Source: Prasinococcaceae sp. CCMP 1430 | Taxonomy: Eukaryota > Plantae > Prasinodermophyta | NCBI GenBank assembly: GCA_013416795.1 | Contig: RQSC01000006.1 | Coordinates: forward strand, 280,885-289,858 | DNA: 8,974 nt | Direction of reading: 5' to 3' | In this document: positions 1,876 to 8,974 of the stretch, piece by piece | Layout: every line of letters begins with the position of its first letter | Numbering within the stretch: position 1 is the stretch's first letter | Program-made: the position numbers and the translations under genes | The notes under the pieces: generated by a model | What the model was told of the DNA's origin: nothing | What the model saw: the letters and a program-made list of their open reading frames with translations, nothing else | Database searches by the model: none

Positions 1876-4284
1876 TCACGTCGGTGGCAGGGCGGTCCAT
1901 GGAGCTGCGCGAGCGCGCCCTCGGAGCAACATCACGGCCGCGATGACGCCGAGCAGCACGACCGCGAGAGCCGCCACGCATGCGATCGCGGCGTTGACGC
2001 CATCTTCCACACCCGCCCGCAGGCGCGATACAATCGAGCCAGATGCTGCCAGCGCCTTGCTACTGTGCTTGCCGAATCGCGCGCTGTCGCGCGCCGGCGC
2101 GGACTCGCTCGGCGGCCTTGCCTTTGTGGCTTCGCAAAGGAGGCGCTCGGCCTCCGCCGCCTTGAGCGTCGCGGCCATCGCCTTGCGCTCCAACAGCACG
2201 AGCTGTTCGGCAGCAGTTTCTCCCCGCAGGGTGAGCTCAGAGATCGTTGCCTCGGCTGCATCTGCCCTGCGTGCCTGCGCCGCTGCGTCGAGTGCAGATG
2301 CAAGCGCCTGCGCGTTCGCGTGTCGCTCGGCTGCCTCGGCGGCACCCGCGCTCTGTGCAAGCGCGTTGGCGACTGCAGCACTCGCGACTGCGCGCGCTGC
2401 GAGCCGCGTGGTTGCGGCGTCGTTTGTGCCTTCTGCAGACCGACTCGCAGAATGCGTCTCACTCGCTGATGTCGTGCTTGCGTCTCTCACCTCTCTGTCG
2501 GCAGCAGCAAGGAGGGCGCGAGCAACCGCTGCGCGTGCGATTGCGCGCGCAGCAGTCCGGGCGCTGTCATCTTCGTCGCCCTCGTCGCCCTCGCCATTCG
2601 CGCGGGTGGCAATGTCTCCGACAGTGGCGACAATGACGGGAGGTGCGCAGGGCGGCTGTGTGCCCGGTGTTCCGCTAGGACTGTCCACAGGAGCCTTTGC
2701 TGCTGCTTGCTCGAGCGCGACGGGTGCTCGCGCGCTAGCAGGGCTGTACTCTCCAAGCTCTTGCAGCGCCCCGAGGGCCTGTCGCACCGCCGTGTCGATC
2801 ACGAAGAGCGTGCAGCAATCTTGATCGACGGGCGACGCAGCTCTGATGGTGGCGCAACGCTGCTGCTGCGCGTGGCTCCCGGCCAATGAATGTGGCGACT
2901 GTCGCGTATCTGCCATGCGCGCCTCTCCCGGTCGTGGCCCTGGCTCCCTCGCATCCGCGCATTCGACGCCATCGCCAGCCTCGTCCCCTGACGAGTCATC
3001 ATCGGTGCTCGTGGGCGTGGCAGCAACGACTGCTGCGGTCGCAGCGACGTCGCTTGGTCTGGGCGTTGCGACAGCGGTCATGTCGCTCGACAGCGCGCGC
3101 GGCCGCAGCGGCGCGCGCCCCGCGCCCCGAATAGCAGTCTGACTGTCGTCGTTGCCTTGATCGCACATCGTCGGCGCGCCAACCTCTGGCCGCGCTGCAC
3201 GGCAGGTCGCAGGCGTCGCATTGCCATTCGCGCTCTTGATGTCTGCTTCGCCGTTGGGCGCATCGCCCTGATAGGATGCGTTCTCGTTGCTAGTGCGCTG
3301 TTGCGGACTCGCCGCAGGGCTGCTCTGCGCGCTCCCGCTGCGGCTGCGGCTGCGGCTGCGGCTCCGCGCTCGCTCTGCGCGCTGCACGGCGCGGCGCAAG
3401 GCCATCGTTGCGTCGTCCGCGCGGCGCAGGCGCGCGCGAAGCTCCTCCTCGGCGCGAACGATCGGCTGTTCATCGGCTGTACACGCGCTCGCCGGTGGAG
3501 AGGACTGCACGCCTGCAGAGACCGCCGCCATCCGCGCGACGAGCGCGTGTGCGTCTGCCGCACGCGCGAGGCTCGCGAGCGGCGCTTGCGCTGCCTGGTC
3601 GGCGCCATCTTTGGCCGGAGACGGCGCCTGGGGCGACGAGAGGATGTCGGGCGTGCCCACTAGAGATGCGGTGGTCGGCGCCACCACCGAGGCGATGTAC
3701 CCGGGCGTTGAGTCGGGCGATGAGGGCGCATAGCCACAGACTTGCCCGCGCTGGCCACCGCGGTTCAGGATCCGACGACGGGCAAGCGGCGGGGACGACG
3801 GTGATGGGCGTGTCCCACGCAGACCGGGGCTGTTACCACCGTGGCTCGCTCGCCCGCCGAGCAGGGGCTCGCGCTCGTCCTCGTCGCATCCCGCGTCTCC
3901 ATCGATGCCGCGAGTACCTCGCGAGCGCTCGAACGCCCCGAAGAGCGCGCGCACGTCGTCCTCCTCCATCGCGCCTCCGGCGCTCCCTCCTCCCGCGCTG
4001 CCTGCGAGCGCCGTGGACGAAAAGTAGCTCTCGACGCTCGCGTAGCTCCCCGCGAGGCACAGCACGAGGTCCGCGAGCTGCGGCGGCGCCAGCGCGGCCA
4101 GCGCGCCGCTCCTGAAGACGCTCGTCGTCGGCCGAGGCATCGCGTCTAAGGCCTCAGGCTCGGGCTCGCGCGGCGCGGCGGCGGGGTCGACGACCGCCGC
4201 GTCCCCGCGGGACTCCGCGTTGGCATGACCAGCCGCGCGCGCCCCGGTCTCGTCCCGTTCGCCGGGCCGGCCGGCGGACGCCAT
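1876..4284 (-). CDS. Uncharacterised ~802 aa disordered/coiled-coil tail-anchored membrane protein; candidate KASH-like
   Basis: Open frame from CCG-ATG-G (4284, MASAGRPG) to TGA (1878-1876). The body is Ala/Ser/Pro/Asp-rich. Heptad-like segments lie at ~3370-3470 and ~2125-2290, an (RS)5 at 3337-3366, and a hydrophobic helix AAIACVAALAVVLLGVIAAVMLL at 1924-1992, followed by RGRARAAPWTALPPT*. No signal peptide is seen. In-frame introns cannot be excluded. Confidence 0.68.
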   Translation of the reverse strand: MASAGRPGERDETGARAAGHANAESRGDAAVVDPAAAPREPEPEALDAMPRPTTSVFRSGALAALAPPQLADLVLCLAGSYASVESYFSSTALAGSAGGGSAGGAMEEDDVRALFGAFERSRGTRGIDGDAGCDEDEREPLLGGRASHGGNSPGLRGTRPSPSSPPLARRRILNRGGQRGQVCGYAPSSPDSTPGYIASVVAPTTASLVGTPDILSSPQAPSPAKDGADQAAQAPLASLARAADAHALVARMAAVSAGVQSSPPASACTADEQPIVRAEEELRARLRRADDATMALRRAVQRAERARSRSRSRSRSGSAQSSPAASPQQRTSNENASYQGDAPNGEADIKSANGNATPATCRAARPEVGAPTMCDQGNDDSQTAIRGAGRAPLRPRALSSDMTAVATPRPSDVAATAAVVAATPTSTDDDSSGDEAGDGVECADAREPGPRPGEARMADTRQSPHSLAGSHAQQQRCATIRAASPVDQDCCTLFVIDTAVRQALGALQELGEYSPASARAPVALEQAAAKAPVDSPSGTPGTQPPCAPPVIVATVGDIATRANGEGDEGDEDDSARTAARAIARAAVARALLAAADREVRDASTTSASETHSASRSAEGTNDAATTRLAARAVASAAVANALAQSAGAAEAAERHANAQALASALDAAAQARRADAAEATISELTLRGETAAEQLVLLERKAMAATLKAAEAERLLCEATKARPPSESAPARDSARFGKHSSKALAASGSIVSRLRAGVEDGVNAAIACVAALAVVLLGVIAAVMLLRGRARAAPWTALPPT

Positions 4285-4439
4285 CGGCGCCGCGGCCGCG
4301 GAGACTGGACGCCGGCGGTGGCAGGGCCCGCACCTGGCTGGCGCACGCGCACGCTGCGCGCGGAGGAGTGGAGGACGCGCCCGTCGCCCCCTACTGTGGC
4401 GAGGCGCCCGCGCGCCACCGATTGCTCTCTCACACCCAC

Positions 4440-4500
4440 ACCAAAAAAAAAGGCGCGCAAAAAAATCGCGCGCACGAATTCGAAATGTGCTGCGCGCGCA
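4440..4500. promoter_or_regulatory. A-tract cluster upstream of gene B, candidate nucleosome-depleted promoter
   Basis: A9 (4443-4451) and A7 (4459-4465) separated by GGCGCGC, about 160-180 nt upstream of ATG 4284 in otherwise very GC-rich DNA. Confidence 0.3.
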
Positions 4501-4520
4501 GACACACGGTCGACGCCCTA

Positions 4521-4546
4521 ACACACACACACACACACACACACAC

Positions 4547-4583
<37 letters not shown>

Positions 4584-4718
4584 AACACACACACACACAC
4601 ACAGTCACACGCACACACACACACATACACACACAGTCACACGCACACACACACACATACACACACACAGTCACACGCACACACACACACACACAGTCAC
4701 ACACACACACACACACAG

Positions 4719-4779
<61 letters not shown>

Positions 4780-4801
4780 CACAAGCACACGCACACACAC
4801 A

Positions 4802-4837
<36 letters not shown>
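4521..4837. repeat. Compound (CA)n/(TG)n microsatellite, ~317 bp, with recurring interruptions
   Basis: Directly visible CA run interrupted by GCAAA x2, CAGTC x5, CATAC x2 and CAAGC x2. Confidence 0.98.
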
Positions 4838-4839
<2 letters not shown>

Positions 4840-5108
4840 CACGGATGGGATGGGCGGAGTTTGGGGTTGAGCGTCTTTTACTGTACAGTAAGGTGTGGTG
4901 GAGGGTTTCCTGAGCGTGGACGACTTCGAATACGACGGGACCCATCCGGACGGCACTCGCGACGAGGAGCGCGACGCGGCCGGCTTGTGCGAGGACGAGG
5001 GCAGCGATGTTGTGTACGCTGGATTCAATGGCGTCGGCGGGGGGTCGCTGCTCAGTCCTGAGGAGGGTTTCTTTAGCAGCATTCTCGCCGCGCCGCGCAC
5101 TGTGCGTG

Positions 5109-5352: not shown

Positions 5353-6687
5353 CTACGCCGCGGGGTCGAAGCCGCGGCACTGGGACTTGTGCTGCGGCCA
5401 GTGCGCCGCCTGGCACTCCCTGGAGCAGTAGAAGGCCTCGCCGCAGAAGCCGCAGCACCTGAGCCTGTCGACGGCGGCGGCCGACGGCGTCGCGTCGCAC
5501 GCGTCGCACTGGCGGGTCAGGCGCAGCACGTCGAGCGTGCGCCGGGCGGCGCAGCTCCCGGTCTCCTCCCTCAACGTCCGCTTGATCGCCTCGGAAGCGG
5601 CGGCGCTCACGGCGCCGGCGGCGGCCTCGCCCTGCATCTTGGCGAGCCTCGCCTGGAAGAGCGCCGTGTTTGCCGCGTCGTCGTCCTGTGCGGCCGCCTC
5701 GGCGGCCTGGCGCATCCAGTCGAGGCGCTCGGCATCGCTCAGCACGCCCTCCATCTGCGACAAGTAGTACATGGCGACGTAGTCCCCATGCTCGAAGACC
5801 GCTCGGCGGGCCCACGCCTCTGCCGCGCGGCCATCCCTGGCGACGCCCTCGCCGTTGAACAACCGCGCGGCGAGGACGCGCTGCGCCGCCGCGTCGCCCT
5901 GCTCTGCGGCCCGCGAATACCACGTTGCCGCCTCCTCGGCGCTCCGGTGGACTCCCCTGCCCTCGTCGTGGCACTGCCCGAGGATCCGCTGCGCCACCGA
6001 GTGTCCTTGCTCGGCCGCCAGGCGGTACCACCTCGCGGCCGCCTCGTGGTTTCGATCCACGCCCTGGCCCATCGAGCAGAAGAGCCCCAGCGCGTGCTGC
6101 GCGCGCGCGAGGCCCCGCTCGGCCGCGCGCCGGCACCACTCGGCGGCACCGCGATCGTCGCCCTGCTGCGACAGCTCTGCGGCGAAGTGGCACTGCGCCT
6201 CTGCATGCCCGGCCTCGGCCGCGCGTCGCATCCACGCGACGCGGGCGGCCTCGTGGCCGAGCTCTCGAAACGCCTTCGATCGCCGCCACATCGTCTCGGC
6301 GTCGGGGTTCCCTTGCGCCGCGGCCAGCGCGGCGCGCTGGCGAGCGGCGCGGGCACTGGGCGATTGGAGCGGCGTCCACGCGAGCACTTCGACGCGCGAG
6401 GCGCCGCTGGTGCTGGTGGAGGCGTCGCCGCCGCTGCTGCGGCGCTCGTCGCCCCGCTCAATCGCTTCGCCGCAGCAGCGCCGCTCCTCCCGCTGCGGCC
6501 CTGGCATGGCGTCCGGCAGCGCGGCCCCCGCGTAGCACGTCGGGCGCAATCGCGCCTCGGGCTGCGCCCGCTGCCTCGCTCCGCTCAGTCGCTTCCCAGC
6601 CTGTCCGGACACGGCTCCGAGCGCGCCCGGGCGCATGGGCTCCGCGCGCGGACCCGCAGCTGCTGCCGCCGCTATCGTCCCCGGCAT
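5353..6687 (-). CDS. Sel1-like (SLR) repeat protein with C-terminal MYND-type zinc finger
   Basis: About 5-6 Sel1 repeats at ~6309-5695, e.g. AQHALGLFCSMGQGVDRNHEAAARWYRLAAEQG and AQRILGQCHDEGRGVHRSAEEAATWYSRAAEQG. MYND motif CDAC...CGFC...YCSRECQAAHWPQHKSQC at 5508-5377. TAG at 5355-5353. Start uncertain: ATG at 6873, 6687, 6636 or 6507 (GCC-ATG). Confidence 0.9.
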   Translation of the reverse strand: MPGTIAAAAAAGPRAEPMRPGALGAVSGQAGKRLSGARQRAQPEARLRPTCYAGAALPDAMPGPQREERRCCGEAIERGDERRSSGGDASTSTSGASRVEVLAWTPLQSPSARAARQRAALAAAQGNPDAETMWRRSKAFRELGHEAARVAWMRRAAEAGHAEAQCHFAAELSQQGDDRGAAEWCRRAAERGLARAQHALGLFCSMGQGVDRNHEAAARWYRLAAEQGHSVAQRILGQCHDEGRGVHRSAEEAATWYSRAAEQGDAAAQRVLAARLFNGEGVARDGRAAEAWARRAVFEHGDYVAMYYLSQMEGVLSDAERLDWMRQAAEAAAQDDDAANTALFQARLAKMQGEAAAGAVSAAASEAIKRTLREETGSCAARRTLDVLRLTRQCDACDATPSAAAVDRLRCCGFCGEAFYCSRECQAAHWPQHKSQCRGFDPAA

Positions 6688-6965
6688 TGCCACCCACGTA
6701 GGCCTCGGCGTTGCGGATGTGCCAGCCCACCCATGCGCCGCGATCGACGTAGCAGGGCGAGCGCACGCCCGAGGGGGGGCACTCTTCGCGCGACGACTCG
6801 TCGGCGANAAGTACACGCGATCGGCGTTGCGTATGCTTTGATATGTGCACCCCACGGTGCTGTACAAATACATTCAATTTGATGGGCTCCGCGCCCGTTT
6901 TCGTAACGGCTTGTGGGGGAACGGAGCGGCGCGCCCTCGGCCTCGGGCGGCGGGTGTCTGGCGGC

Positions 6966-6995: not shown

Positions 6996-7249
6996 TGTGC
7001 CCGGAGCGATGGGCTGGGGCGCGCCTCGGGCACGGTGCGCGCGCGCGCGGCGGCCGCTGCTGCGCTGGGCGATGGGCATCGGCTCGCTGCACGGAGCCCG
7101 CTGAGGGGAAATGGTCGGTGTCGTTGCACTTGCCTATCAGTGCAAGCGAAGAAAGGAAGAAGGGGGTGTCGCGGCGCGATGGTGGTGGGGGTCTACTACT
7201 AATTGCCCTCCGCGCGCGGTGCCCGTCGCCACTCGCACGGTCACGCCGC

Positions 7250-8974
7250 CTACGGGACAGGCACCGGATCGGGCACCGCGATGGGCGCCTTGGTGGGCGC
7301 GTCGGGGGGGAGGCACCCCACCGGCACGAGCTCGGCCCACAGGCCCACGACTCTCTCTTGGCCCTCGGGAGTCCAGAAGTGCTTGGTGTCCAGCTCGAAG
7401 GTCTCGATGTCCAGCGTCATCTCCCCCACGAGCGGGAAGACCCTGAAGAAGGGCTTGATCGCGTAGTCGATGCGGCCTGCGGCGCCGGGCAGGCTGATGA
7501 TCGTCGGAGTCTTGTTGATGATGGAGACCTTGTCGGGGCACAGCTTGACGCAGCCCAACCCCCCCTCCGGGCAGACCTCCTCCGGAGGGGTGAGGCCGGC
7601 GAGCTCGCCCGCTGGGGGCAGGCCGTCCCGGAGGAAGTCGGGCAGAGCGTAGCACGTGCCGTTGTTGGGCCACTGGTCCGGATCGTTGGTGGTGGACAGC
7701 AGCTTGATCGGCACGTCGACCGTCACAGTCCCGTCGGGCACGCCAAACGGCGGGGGGGTTATGATGACGTCGAAGGAGGCGATCACCGTGTACAGGTAGG
7801 GGGGGTCAACCGGGGTGTTGTCGTACGAGAAGCTGCTGGCGAGCTGGAACTTCGTGCGCGGCTTGTCGCAGTCGGGGGTGCACTGCACGGGCGCCTTGGT
7901 GGGCCCGCCTTGGAGGGGACCCGTGCAGAAGGAGCTGCGCTCGTCGAAGGGGATGCCAAACTCCGTCGTGGGCGTGCCCCAGAAGACGCCGTTGGGGCGC
8001 TCGAGGCTCTCGCAGTCCTTCAGCTCGGGCAGCGACGCGTTGGGAGGGGGCCTGTGCTGCACCGTCGGGCGCGAGAACTTGCCGGTCGCGTCGTCGATGA
8101 GAAAGGCTCCAAAGTACGTGGCTTCCGGCTCGAAGCAGGGGTTGAACGCCGGCGACTTCGTGGGCACGGCGGGCGACTTGGTGGGCGCCGCGGTCGGGGC
8201 GGCCGTGGGGTTGGCGGTCGGGCGGCGCGTGGGGGCCTCCGTCGGCGGGGCGGGGCGCGTGGGCGCGGCCGGCAGCGGCTCGCGGGTGGGCGCCACGGGC
8301 CCCACCGGCACGATGGGCGCGTCGGTGGGCGGCTCCACGGGCGCCGGGGTAGGGGGCGGGCGCTCGGTGGGGCTGGGCGTCGGGCTGGTGGTGGGCGAGG
8401 CGGTGGGCCTGCGCGTGGGGTTGACGGTCGGGTAGGCGGTCGGGTTGGCGGTTGGGTTGTGCGTGGGCGAGTCGGTGGGCGCCTTGGTGGGGCGCGGGCA
8501 GGCGCCGCACACCTGGCAGGCGCCGGGGCAGCAGTCGCCGCTCAGGTCGCACTGCGAACGGGGTTTGGGGGTGTCGGGTGGACGTGTGTGCAGAGCGCGG
8601 CGAGGTCAGTGCTCGGGTCGACCGCGGCGGTGTGGGCGACGCGCGCTCGCTCAAACAGCCCGCTGCGCGCCGCACCTGCTCGTCGCAGTAGCAGCCCGAG
8701 GGGAGCTGCTTGCCGCAGGTGCGCAGCGTGCAGCGCTCGTTGGAGACGGGCGACTTGGTGGGGCTCTTGGTGGGAGGCTCGAGCGGCGCGTAGGTGGGCT
8801 TGACTGGCACCGCTGGCGCCTCGGTAGGCCCCTTGCCGGGCACTACGGGGGCATCGGTCACCGGCCTGTAGGTACGCGCGGGCGCCTCGGTGGGGTAGGG
8901 GCGCGTCATGACGGCTCCTGCGTCGCGCGCGGCGAGGAGCGCCGCGACGGCCGCCACGACGGCCGCCGCGACCG
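7250..8974 (-). CDS. Secreted mucin/extensin-like Pro-Thr-rich protein with a somatomedin-B-like Cys module and a C-terminal choice-of-anchor K / THxN-like beta domain; 5' end outside the window; exons >8974-8676 and 8551-7250
   Basis: The frame is open to the window edge and reads VAAAVVAAVAALLAARDAGA|V, like a signal peptide h-region and cleavage site. PT(K/E/A/D)(A/S)P repeats flank the spliced module CTLRTCGKQLPSGCYCDEQ|CDLSGDCCPGACQVCGAC, which has the SMB core C-x-CD-x2-C-x3-GDCC. A globular region at ~8137-7313 carries N-glycosylation sequons NAS, NGT and NKT. Strong GC3 bias. TAG at 7252-7250. Confidence 0.85.
8552..8675 (-). other. Intron of gene D (124 nt, phase 0)
   Basis: Donor CAG|GTGCGG at 8675 and acceptor TTCGCAG|TGC at 8552. 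Splicing joins two ORFs in different frames and completes the Cys module. Confidence 0.9.

Follow-up and report, generated by a model that had tools for sequence, protein, structure and literature searches.

The window analysed here is a stretch of 8,974 nucleotides from Prasinococcaceae sp. CCMP 1430 (contig RQSC01000006.1, positions 280,885 to 289,858), and its right-hand end carries, on the minus strand, a gene for a protein of about 530 residues that is built of a signal, a linker, a 10-Cys knot, a stalk, a globular head and a tail. An earlier note on this DNA had proposed, from motifs matched by eye, that the head is a bacterial-type surface domain of the choice-of-anchor K / THxN kind. 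We find that the head is very probably a genuine homologue of that bacterial family, if a divergent one, and we consider the reading as a whole, in which a remote-homologue head sits on a secretory-pathway protein and was acquired by transfer from a bacterium, to be likely. The gene is laid out as follows.

8676-8974, minus strand: exon 1, with its 5' end beyond the window; in translation the hydrophobic core runs from 8972 and is followed by a short linker of Pro and Thr and by one half of a Cys-rich module
8676-8732, minus strand: first half of the Cys-rich module, C-x4-C-x8-C-x-C-D-E-Q
8552-8675, minus strand: intron of 124 nt, GT..AG, phase 0, dividing the Cys-rich module; from joints in RNA contigs
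8498-8551, minus strand: start of exon 2 and second half of the Cys-rich module, C-x5-C-C-x3-C-x2-C-x2-C
8138-8497, minus strand: Pro/Thr/Ala-rich stalk of about 120 residues, mucin-like in composition
7313-8137, minus strand: globular head of 275 residues with 10 Cys, three N-x-S/T sequons and an insertion of about 25 residues at about 7595-7670
7250-7312, minus strand: short, Pro-rich C-terminal tail and TAG stop (7250-7252)
7100-7249, minus strand: 3' untranslated region, reaching at least this far (an X15 contig matches 7100-8200)

All the motifs quoted in the earlier note were found, in the order it gave, in the translation of the minus-strand open reading frame (ORF) 7250-8512 (420 codons, translated 7253-8512), and the head interval 7313-8137 is exactly residues 126-400 of that ORF. 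The intron was first predicted from the sequence and then borne out by RNA-type contigs: the joint 8551->8676, which skips 124 nt and reads CT..AC on the plus strand, is present in contigs of three runs (X15, X16 and X17), where its shorter flank measures up to 255 nt (X15), and on the coding strand the intron ends read GTGCGG...TCGCAG. One X15 contig reproduces 7100-8200 with zero differences, RNA contigs cover exon 1 positions 8676-8946, and pieces of the gene also occur in a seawater metatranscriptome (X19). The G+C content at third codon positions (GC3) is 0.92 in the head and 0.87 in the neighbouring Sel1/MYND gene, so the host-like GC3 that had been claimed holds. Because the intron is spliced in RNA contigs, GC3 is like that of the neighbours and a paralogue is transcribed, this is a real, spliced and expressed nuclear eukaryotic gene. 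A metagenome contig from Tara (L002) is syntenic and 97% identical, with the same downstream Sel1/zf-MYND gene. About 14 runs under two organism labels (A and B) contain the stretch with a word share of 0.96-0.98, and it is more divergent in organisms C and D.

In the frame of L002 a Met start is followed by an Arg-rich n-region and then by about 21 Ala/Val/Leu hydrophobic residues. This charged n-region and hydrophobic core agree with the secreted-type N-terminus proposed earlier, and we read the N-terminus, from these features rather than from a predictor, as a signal peptide or signal anchor. Of the 118 stalk residues (8-125 of the ORF), 38 are Pro, 23 are Thr and 18 are Ala, as expected of the mucin-like stalk described in the earlier note; the stalk has a weak Pfam PT-repeat match below the cut-off and is presumably O-glycosylated. 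The tail sequence has no hydrophobic segment and thus no anchor of the glycosylphosphatidylinositol, transmembrane or PEP-CTERM type, and the NCBIfam scan of the ORF gave no match to a PEP-CTERM model. Across the splice junction the Cys module reads C-x-C-D-x-x-C-x4-D-C-C-x3-C, a pattern that may resemble the eight-Cys core of somatomedin B (PF01033); the two halves of the module, each scanned alone, had no Pfam match.

The head is defined by the following motifs and blocks, of which the single motifs are read from the translation.

7970-7987, minus strand: VFWGTP
7928-7936, minus strand: SSF, with a second copy at 7829-7837
7811-7849, minus strand: FQLASSFSYDNTP, counterpart of the F-x-L-G-x-F-T-H-x-N-x-P strand
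7775-7849, minus strand: the same counterpart plus the following loop, FQLASSFSYDNTP and after it VDPPYLYTVIAS; this loop exceeds its bacterial counterpart by about 5 residues and is equivalent to calcium/peptide-binding loop 1 in MpPBD, the peptide-binding domain of MpIBP
7760-7786, minus strand: VIASFDVII
7697-7726, minus strand: VTVDVPIKLL
7682-7696, minus strand: STTND
7649-7720, minus strand: VDVPIKLLSTTNDPDQWPNNGTCY, counterpart of F-x-F-x-H-x-E-T-P-N (loop 2; N333 in MpPBD) and the most conserved algal block
7514-7540, minus strand: CPDKVSIIN
7445-7468, minus strand: DYAIKPFF
7361-7378, minus strand: FWTPEG
7328-7342, minus strand: LWAEL
7328-7540, minus strand: C-terminal third of the head (CPDKVSIIN ... 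DYAIKPFF ... FWTPEG ... LWAEL), which holds most of the statistical homology signal

To obtain bacterial members of the family, we back-translated F-x-L-G-x-F-T-H-x-N-x-P and scanned bacterial and archaeal genomes. This retrieved more than 100 bacterial ORFs, many of them about 250 residues long and ending in PEP-CTERM or VPLPA-CTERM tails. All ten of those tested pass the NCBIfam model NF038131 (68-135 bits against a cut-off of 30), and most pass NF038125 too. From 98 verified bacterial domains we built an alignment (A2), in which F-x-L-G-x-F-T-H-x-N-x-P is invariant by construction. Its consensus, G.W...WG...SGY.F...F.LGTFTH.N.PI...F.F.H.ETPN...PC...C.D.V...Y...I.GF...F.T.E...N.A.L.A, is nearly identical to the pattern that the earlier note had given, which is thus genuine. 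The conserved positions outside the imposed pattern are W-G, S-x-Y-x-F, H-x-E-T-x-N, the D of C-x-D-x-V, G-F and the E of F-x-T-x-E.

The algal sequences were aligned separately (A3: the window copy, P0002, P0004 and the exon of P0003), and the two profiles were compared with hhalign. The comparison of A3 with A2 gave a probability of 88.4%, an E of 2.8e-6 and a score of 43.8, and at low mact the two profiles align collinearly across about 206 columns, with the motifs paired as in the earlier note apart from STTND (see below). The reversed query scored 13.0 and 60 column shuffles 13.0±1.8 (maximum 17.8); 60 shuffles of 10-column blocks, which keep the motifs and lose their order, reached 19.3±1.3 (maximum 23). 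With a bacterial hidden Markov model (HMM) of 101 sequences and filters off, P0004 scored 15.2, P0002 11.7 and the window copy 7.9 bits, corresponding at Z=1 to E values of 6e-7, 6.7e-6 and 1e-4, and none of the 2000 shuffles per sequence reached the observed score (maximum 6.2 bits). The strongest part of the head is residues 186-275, which alone gave a probability of 92.8%, an E of 3.8e-7 and a score of 42 against 10.6±2.1 for shuffles. In a feature search of the ESM Atlas, where scores below 0.9 count as leads only, the cluster named 'THxN family PEP-CTERM protein' came first at 0.86 (182 of 256 features), and it came first again, at 0.87, when the search was repeated with the 66%-identical paralogue. 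Correction for the roughly 20,000 families that could be tested brings the hhalign E near 0.05; despite this we favour homology, because the hypothesis had been fixed beforehand and a method of an independent kind agreed. The kinship claimed in the earlier note thus stands at the level of remote homology, and its series of motifs is real, ordered and far above shuffled controls. It is a case in which scans with curated HMMs miss a relationship that profile-profile comparison recovers.

Residue by residue, the algal head appears to keep W-G, the F-x-L-x-x-F strand, the N and P of T-H-x-N-x-P and the P-N of E-T-P-N, together with the Asp of C-P-D-K-V and the Glu of F-W-T-P-E. It has lost T-H (to S-Y), G (to A), the H and E of H-x-E, and G-F (to P-F-F). 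In place of T-H-x-N the algal copies carry S-Y-D-N or S-Y-A-N, and the replacement of THxN by SYDN reported earlier is indeed seen in the window copy. Added in the alga are a Pro-rich loop 1 that is about 5 residues longer, the insertion of about 25 residues after loop 2 and eight extra Cys. The earlier note had paired STTND with ETPN, as does the HMMER local alignment; hhalign and MAFFT both give QWPN instead, which keeps the P, the N and the following Cys, so that the original pairing is probably off and we prefer QWPN. The Asn of QWPN is the sole column that is invariant across all 102 aligned sequences. We therefore describe the head as a divergent homologue and not as a member of the family by curated standards, because it falls below the 30-bit cut-off of NF038131, does not carry T-H-x-N and has no bacterial anchor.

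The bacterial family itself has a solved structure. Searched against the PDB, the A2 profile matched the peptide-binding domain of MpIBP from Marinomonas primoryensis (6X5V, 6X6Q and 5K8G; E 5e-40) and that of FrhA from Vibrio cholerae (9Y9W; E 5e-39). Several of the pattern matches are giant RTX-type proteins (in Marinomonas, Halomonas, Castellaniella and others), and a 2026 preprint annotates choice-of-anchor K in RTX adhesins of Aeromonas. The choice-of-anchor K / THxN family is thus the same domain as the Ca2+-dependent peptide-binding domain of MpIBP and FrhA. That domain is an oblong beta-sandwich with two Ca2+ in a pocket at its tip, where the free alpha-carboxylate of the C-terminal residue of a cell-surface protein is bound between two loops, and binding is abolished by EDTA (ethylenediaminetetraacetic acid) or by amidation. 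It anchors Marinomonas to diatoms and V. cholerae to diatoms, erythrocytes and gut epithelium, and peptide inhibitors have already been built against it. Loop 1 of MpPBD comprises V293, Y294, S295 and G296 (bioRxiv 10.1101/2020.11.18.389114). When the profiles are mapped onto the structure, T-H-x-N-x-P runs directly into this loop (V293-G296), and the N of E-T-P-N is N333 in loop 2.

The domain has been described as always associated with large adhesins secreted by type 1 systems (PMC10523503). Our collection also contains it as stand-alone PEP-CTERM or VPLPA-CTERM proteins of about 250 residues, in the Roseobacter group, Marinobacter, cyanobacteria, Chloroflexota, actinomycetes and a Methanothrix metagenome-assembled genome (MAG). 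The family spans at least 8 phyla (including Pseudomonadota, Actinomycetota, Chloroflexota, Cyanobacteriota, Gemmatimonadota, Acidobacteriota, Chlamydiota and the one Methanothrix MAG), and it includes many marine alga-associated genera. That the stand-alone THxN PEP-CTERM proteins are versions of a solved peptide-binding domain suggests a function for many unannotated bacterial surface proteins. In a Paracoccaceae MAG, two tandem genes of the THxN family, VPLPA-type, were seen at 2042-3661 of locus L060.

The earlier note had also suggested modelling the head with AlphaFold and searching with Foldseek. AlphaFold 2 on the two-sequence algal alignment gave a predicted local distance difference test (pLDDT) of 31, which is unusable. 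With a mixed algal and bacterial alignment (A4) it returned an all-beta model (pLDDT 64.6, predicted template modelling score 0.69, with pLDDT 80-87 over the C-terminal strands), for which Foldseek found in the PDB only the MpIBP and FrhA peptide-binding domains (E 1.9e-5). VIA placed this model on residues 200-404 of 5K8G (Z 13.2, 189 residues, root-mean-square deviation 3.9), and the next unrelated fold had a Z of 3.4.

Within the algal family the two blocks equivalent to the binding loops are the best conserved, with 12/12 and 23/24 residues identical against 66% overall. Head residues 110-121 are invariant between the two full-length algal copies, and the three head sequons are kept in the paralogue. 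Since no other part of the family is as well conserved as these two blocks, the simplest reading is that a binding site of changed chemistry has been conserved at the same tip. Its putative ligand need not be a peptide C-terminus, because the pocket appears rebuilt (T-H to S-Y, loss of H-x-E, a longer loop 1 and extra disulfides).

Relatives of the algal protein are few. A word-indexed protein search returned only P0001, with an identical head, and P0002, with a head 66% identical; the two come from a single Tara sample. HMMER, run exhaustively over 1.84 billion representative proteins, returned only P0001, as the cluster of the alga itself, and two fragments. The members of this cluster all derive from ENA or Logan assemblies. 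Scans of metagenome, bacterial-genome and viral contigs with the algal profile gave no confirmed relative. All known algal copies are at least about 58% identical, which suggests a young and narrow family. Sub-threshold PT-repeat and keratin matches in Pfam and NCBIfam, obtained with the ORF, the head and the exon pieces, were set aside as noise, and the single match of a tblastn search against plasmids (E=2) was discarded.

On distribution only, horizontal transfer is the best reading of how the domain reached the alga; this part of the earlier proposal is upheld by the distribution, and the tree yields no stable donor for it. A quick tree placed the algal clade with Chloroflexota and Methanothrix (96 in the Shimodaira-Hasegawa-like approximate likelihood ratio test), and after removal of eight long rows it moved to Cyanobacteriota and Actinomycetota (95). 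The attempt to name a donor by phylogeny thus failed, and we read the placement as long-branch behaviour.

A number of our results weigh against this account of a remote homologue acquired from bacteria. The hmmscan check that the earlier note had proposed found no Pfam or NCBIfam family at E<=10, for the whole ORF or for the head alone, and taken by the letter it went against the claim; the algal profile likewise found nothing at E<=10 among PDB sequences, and the shape search of the ESM Atlas was uninformative (TM, the template modelling score, <=0.35 throughout). The window copy scores just 7.9 bits with the bacterial HMM. Significance is carried mainly by the last ~75 residues of the head, and residues 1-165 alone give an E of 0.01, about 3 standard deviations (SD) above shuffles, with the W-G block matched at the collinear template position. 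The very residues after which the family is named appear to have been replaced, T-H by S-Y, and H-x-E is gone. The match of the structure model shows compatibility rather than independent proof, because bacterial rows dominate A4 and drive the fold. On the side of origin, the algal stem measures 2.8 changes per column and the position of the clade shifts with taxon sampling. The algal profile found no other eukaryote in the collections searched; the bacterial profile was not applied to eukaryotes, among which members nearer to the bacterial type may exist.

How far these points favour other explanations has to be judged against the evidence as a whole. The head could be a lineage-specific orphan beta-sandwich that shares a few short motifs with the bacterial family by chance or convergence, as the lack of a match to curated HMMs, and of one with the algal profile in the exhaustive and PDB searches, would lead one to expect, together with a marginal N-terminal two thirds, absent key residues and Atlas scores (0.86-0.87) below the 0.9 line. 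Chance does not readily produce a score 16-19 SD over shuffles that destroy order, nor three copies each unmatched by 2000 HMMER shuffles; eight motifs keep their order and spacing across some 200 residues, one Asn is invariant in 102 sequences, and two kinds of method converge on one family among millions of clusters. We therefore regard convergence as improbable. The head could also be homologous by an indirect route, either as an ancient gene, eukaryotic or of plastid origin, that was lost in other lineages, or as one that came through a virus or another eukaryote. The extreme divergence from all sampled bacteria is in keeping with such a route, as are a placement that is unstable and once fell beside Cyanobacteriota, a complete amelioration that includes an intron, and the fact that the bacterial profile was not run on eukaryotes. 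However, the algal profile found no relative in any other eukaryote, virus or metagenome record, the family seems young and narrow, and many independent losses would be needed. We hold the indirect route to be improbable as well.

Bacterial contamination or misassembly would account for a domain type that is otherwise bacterial, and we rejected it on the intron, the synteny and GC3. The GT..AG intron is spliced in RNA contigs, the flanking genes are eukaryotic both here and on an independent metagenome contig, the stretch recurs across runs of two organism labels, and its GC3 is like that of its neighbours; the chance of this explanation is negligible. Transfer of a bacterial domain into this algal lineage thus remains the account that we prefer.

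Under that account, a single transfer would have brought the domain from a bacterium into this algal lineage, followed by full adaptation, in which the gene would have gained an intron and host-like GC3, and eukaryotic targeting and a stalk would have replaced the bacterial C-terminal anchor. The gene would also have been duplicated, giving paralogues whose stalks are nearly identical and whose heads have diverged. The product would be a secretory-pathway protein with a signal peptide or anchor, a Pro/Thr linker, a 10-Cys knot, a stalk of about 120 residues and a beta-sandwich head of 275 residues, and the head would be held off the cell on its glycosylated stalk or be released, binding an extracellular ligand at the same tip as in MpIBP and FrhA. 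We infer the secretion or display, the binding function and the direction of transfer, as well as any role in adhesion or the cell covering such as the earlier note suggested. Most likely the head works like a choice-of-anchor K / RTX peptide-binding domain on a tether. More speculatively, a domain that bacteria use to grip algae may have been captured and reused in the phycosphere, the paralogues making up a small and variable set of recognition proteins, surface-bound or secreted, that would serve in the capture of particular bacteria or particles, in cell-cell or gamete recognition, or as soluble decoys occupying ligands that bacterial adhesins or viruses would otherwise bind; we give this idea a small chance only.

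Compared with the proteins of NF038131 and NF038125, the algal head has in collinear order W-G, S-x-[YF], F-x-L-x-x-F-x-x-x-N-x-P, P-N, C-x-D-x-V, an aromatic pair, F-x-T-x-E and L-x-A, and both are predicted to be all-beta sandwiches that stand outside the cell at the end of a tether. The algal head differs in having 10 Cys where the bacterial domain has 2, and in its insertion, its longer loop 1 and the intron of its gene. The order of parts differs too, since the algal head lies C-terminal to a eukaryotic signal and Pro/Thr stalk, whereas the bacterial domain lies N-terminal to a PEP-CTERM, VPLPA-CTERM or other anchor. With the domains of MpIBP (RIII_3; 5K8G, 6X5V/W and 6X6Q) and FrhA (9Y9W and 9YBQ) the alga appears to share the Asn equivalent to the peptide-contacting N333, together with the Asp and the Glu. 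There, however, it is a 'split' domain from which the peptide-binding domain emerges, as part of a giant type-1-secreted protein; in the alga the split domain, the RTX repeats and a secretion signal of that type are all absent, and loop 1 is rebuilt.

Bacterial surface-protein domains inside secreted eukaryotic proteins have precedents. The Trailins of diatoms (bioRxiv 10.1101/2023.03.06.531300) carry choice-of-anchor A next to Pro/Thr/Ser-rich regions and were read as horizontal transfer from bacteria, and MSP130 is choice-of-anchor I in eukaryotes (PMC11878542); these are unrelated in domain family and fold and come from other host lineages. In the papers that could be searched, no eukaryotic member of choice-of-anchor K is reported, and the term occurs there only for bacterial proteins. 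If our reading is true, the algal copy would be the first eukaryotic member of a domain so far known only from prokaryotes, and would join the choice-of-anchor A and I cases. It would also offer a concrete handle on the interaction of the alga with bacteria, viruses or partners, for which the MpPBD and FrhA assays already exist.

The paralogue P0002 is encoded on L001 beside a different downstream gene and is transcribed in the same organism as the window gene (X15). When 7250-8974 of the window is compared with 399-2201 of L001, DNA identity is 96-100% over exon 1 and the stalk (0.044 synonymous substitutions per site, dS), 73-77% over the intron between them and 60-81% over the head (dS 0.43, with a ratio of non-synonymous to synonymous rates, dN/dS, of 0.66). 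Heads that have diverged on identical stalks are in line with a small family whose binding specificity is diversifying. Homogenisation between the paralogues is confined to exons. A 572-nt contig from ENA (P0003) carries head residues ~98-184 in near-identical form with unrelated translation on both sides, and appears to be a copy in a different strain whose head is interrupted by introns. In X19 and X16, contigs show a backward joint of 483 (8798->8316) in which about 19 further letters intervene, and an additional joint skips 72 at 8798->8871; these are probably variants of stalk or linker length, or further paralogues.

Elsewhere in the window, the neighbouring minus-strand ORF 5353-6873 (506 codons) encodes Sel1 repeats followed by a C-terminal Cys/His cluster of the zf-MYND type, with Pfam names taken from the syntenic gene on L002; an assembly N lies near 6807, at the 5' end of this ORF. 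Long repeats rich in CA/TG-type dinucleotides occupy 4500-4900, where GC falls to 0.55 and GC skew is -0.37, and they lie inside a minus-strand ORF of 1074 codons (1876-5100).

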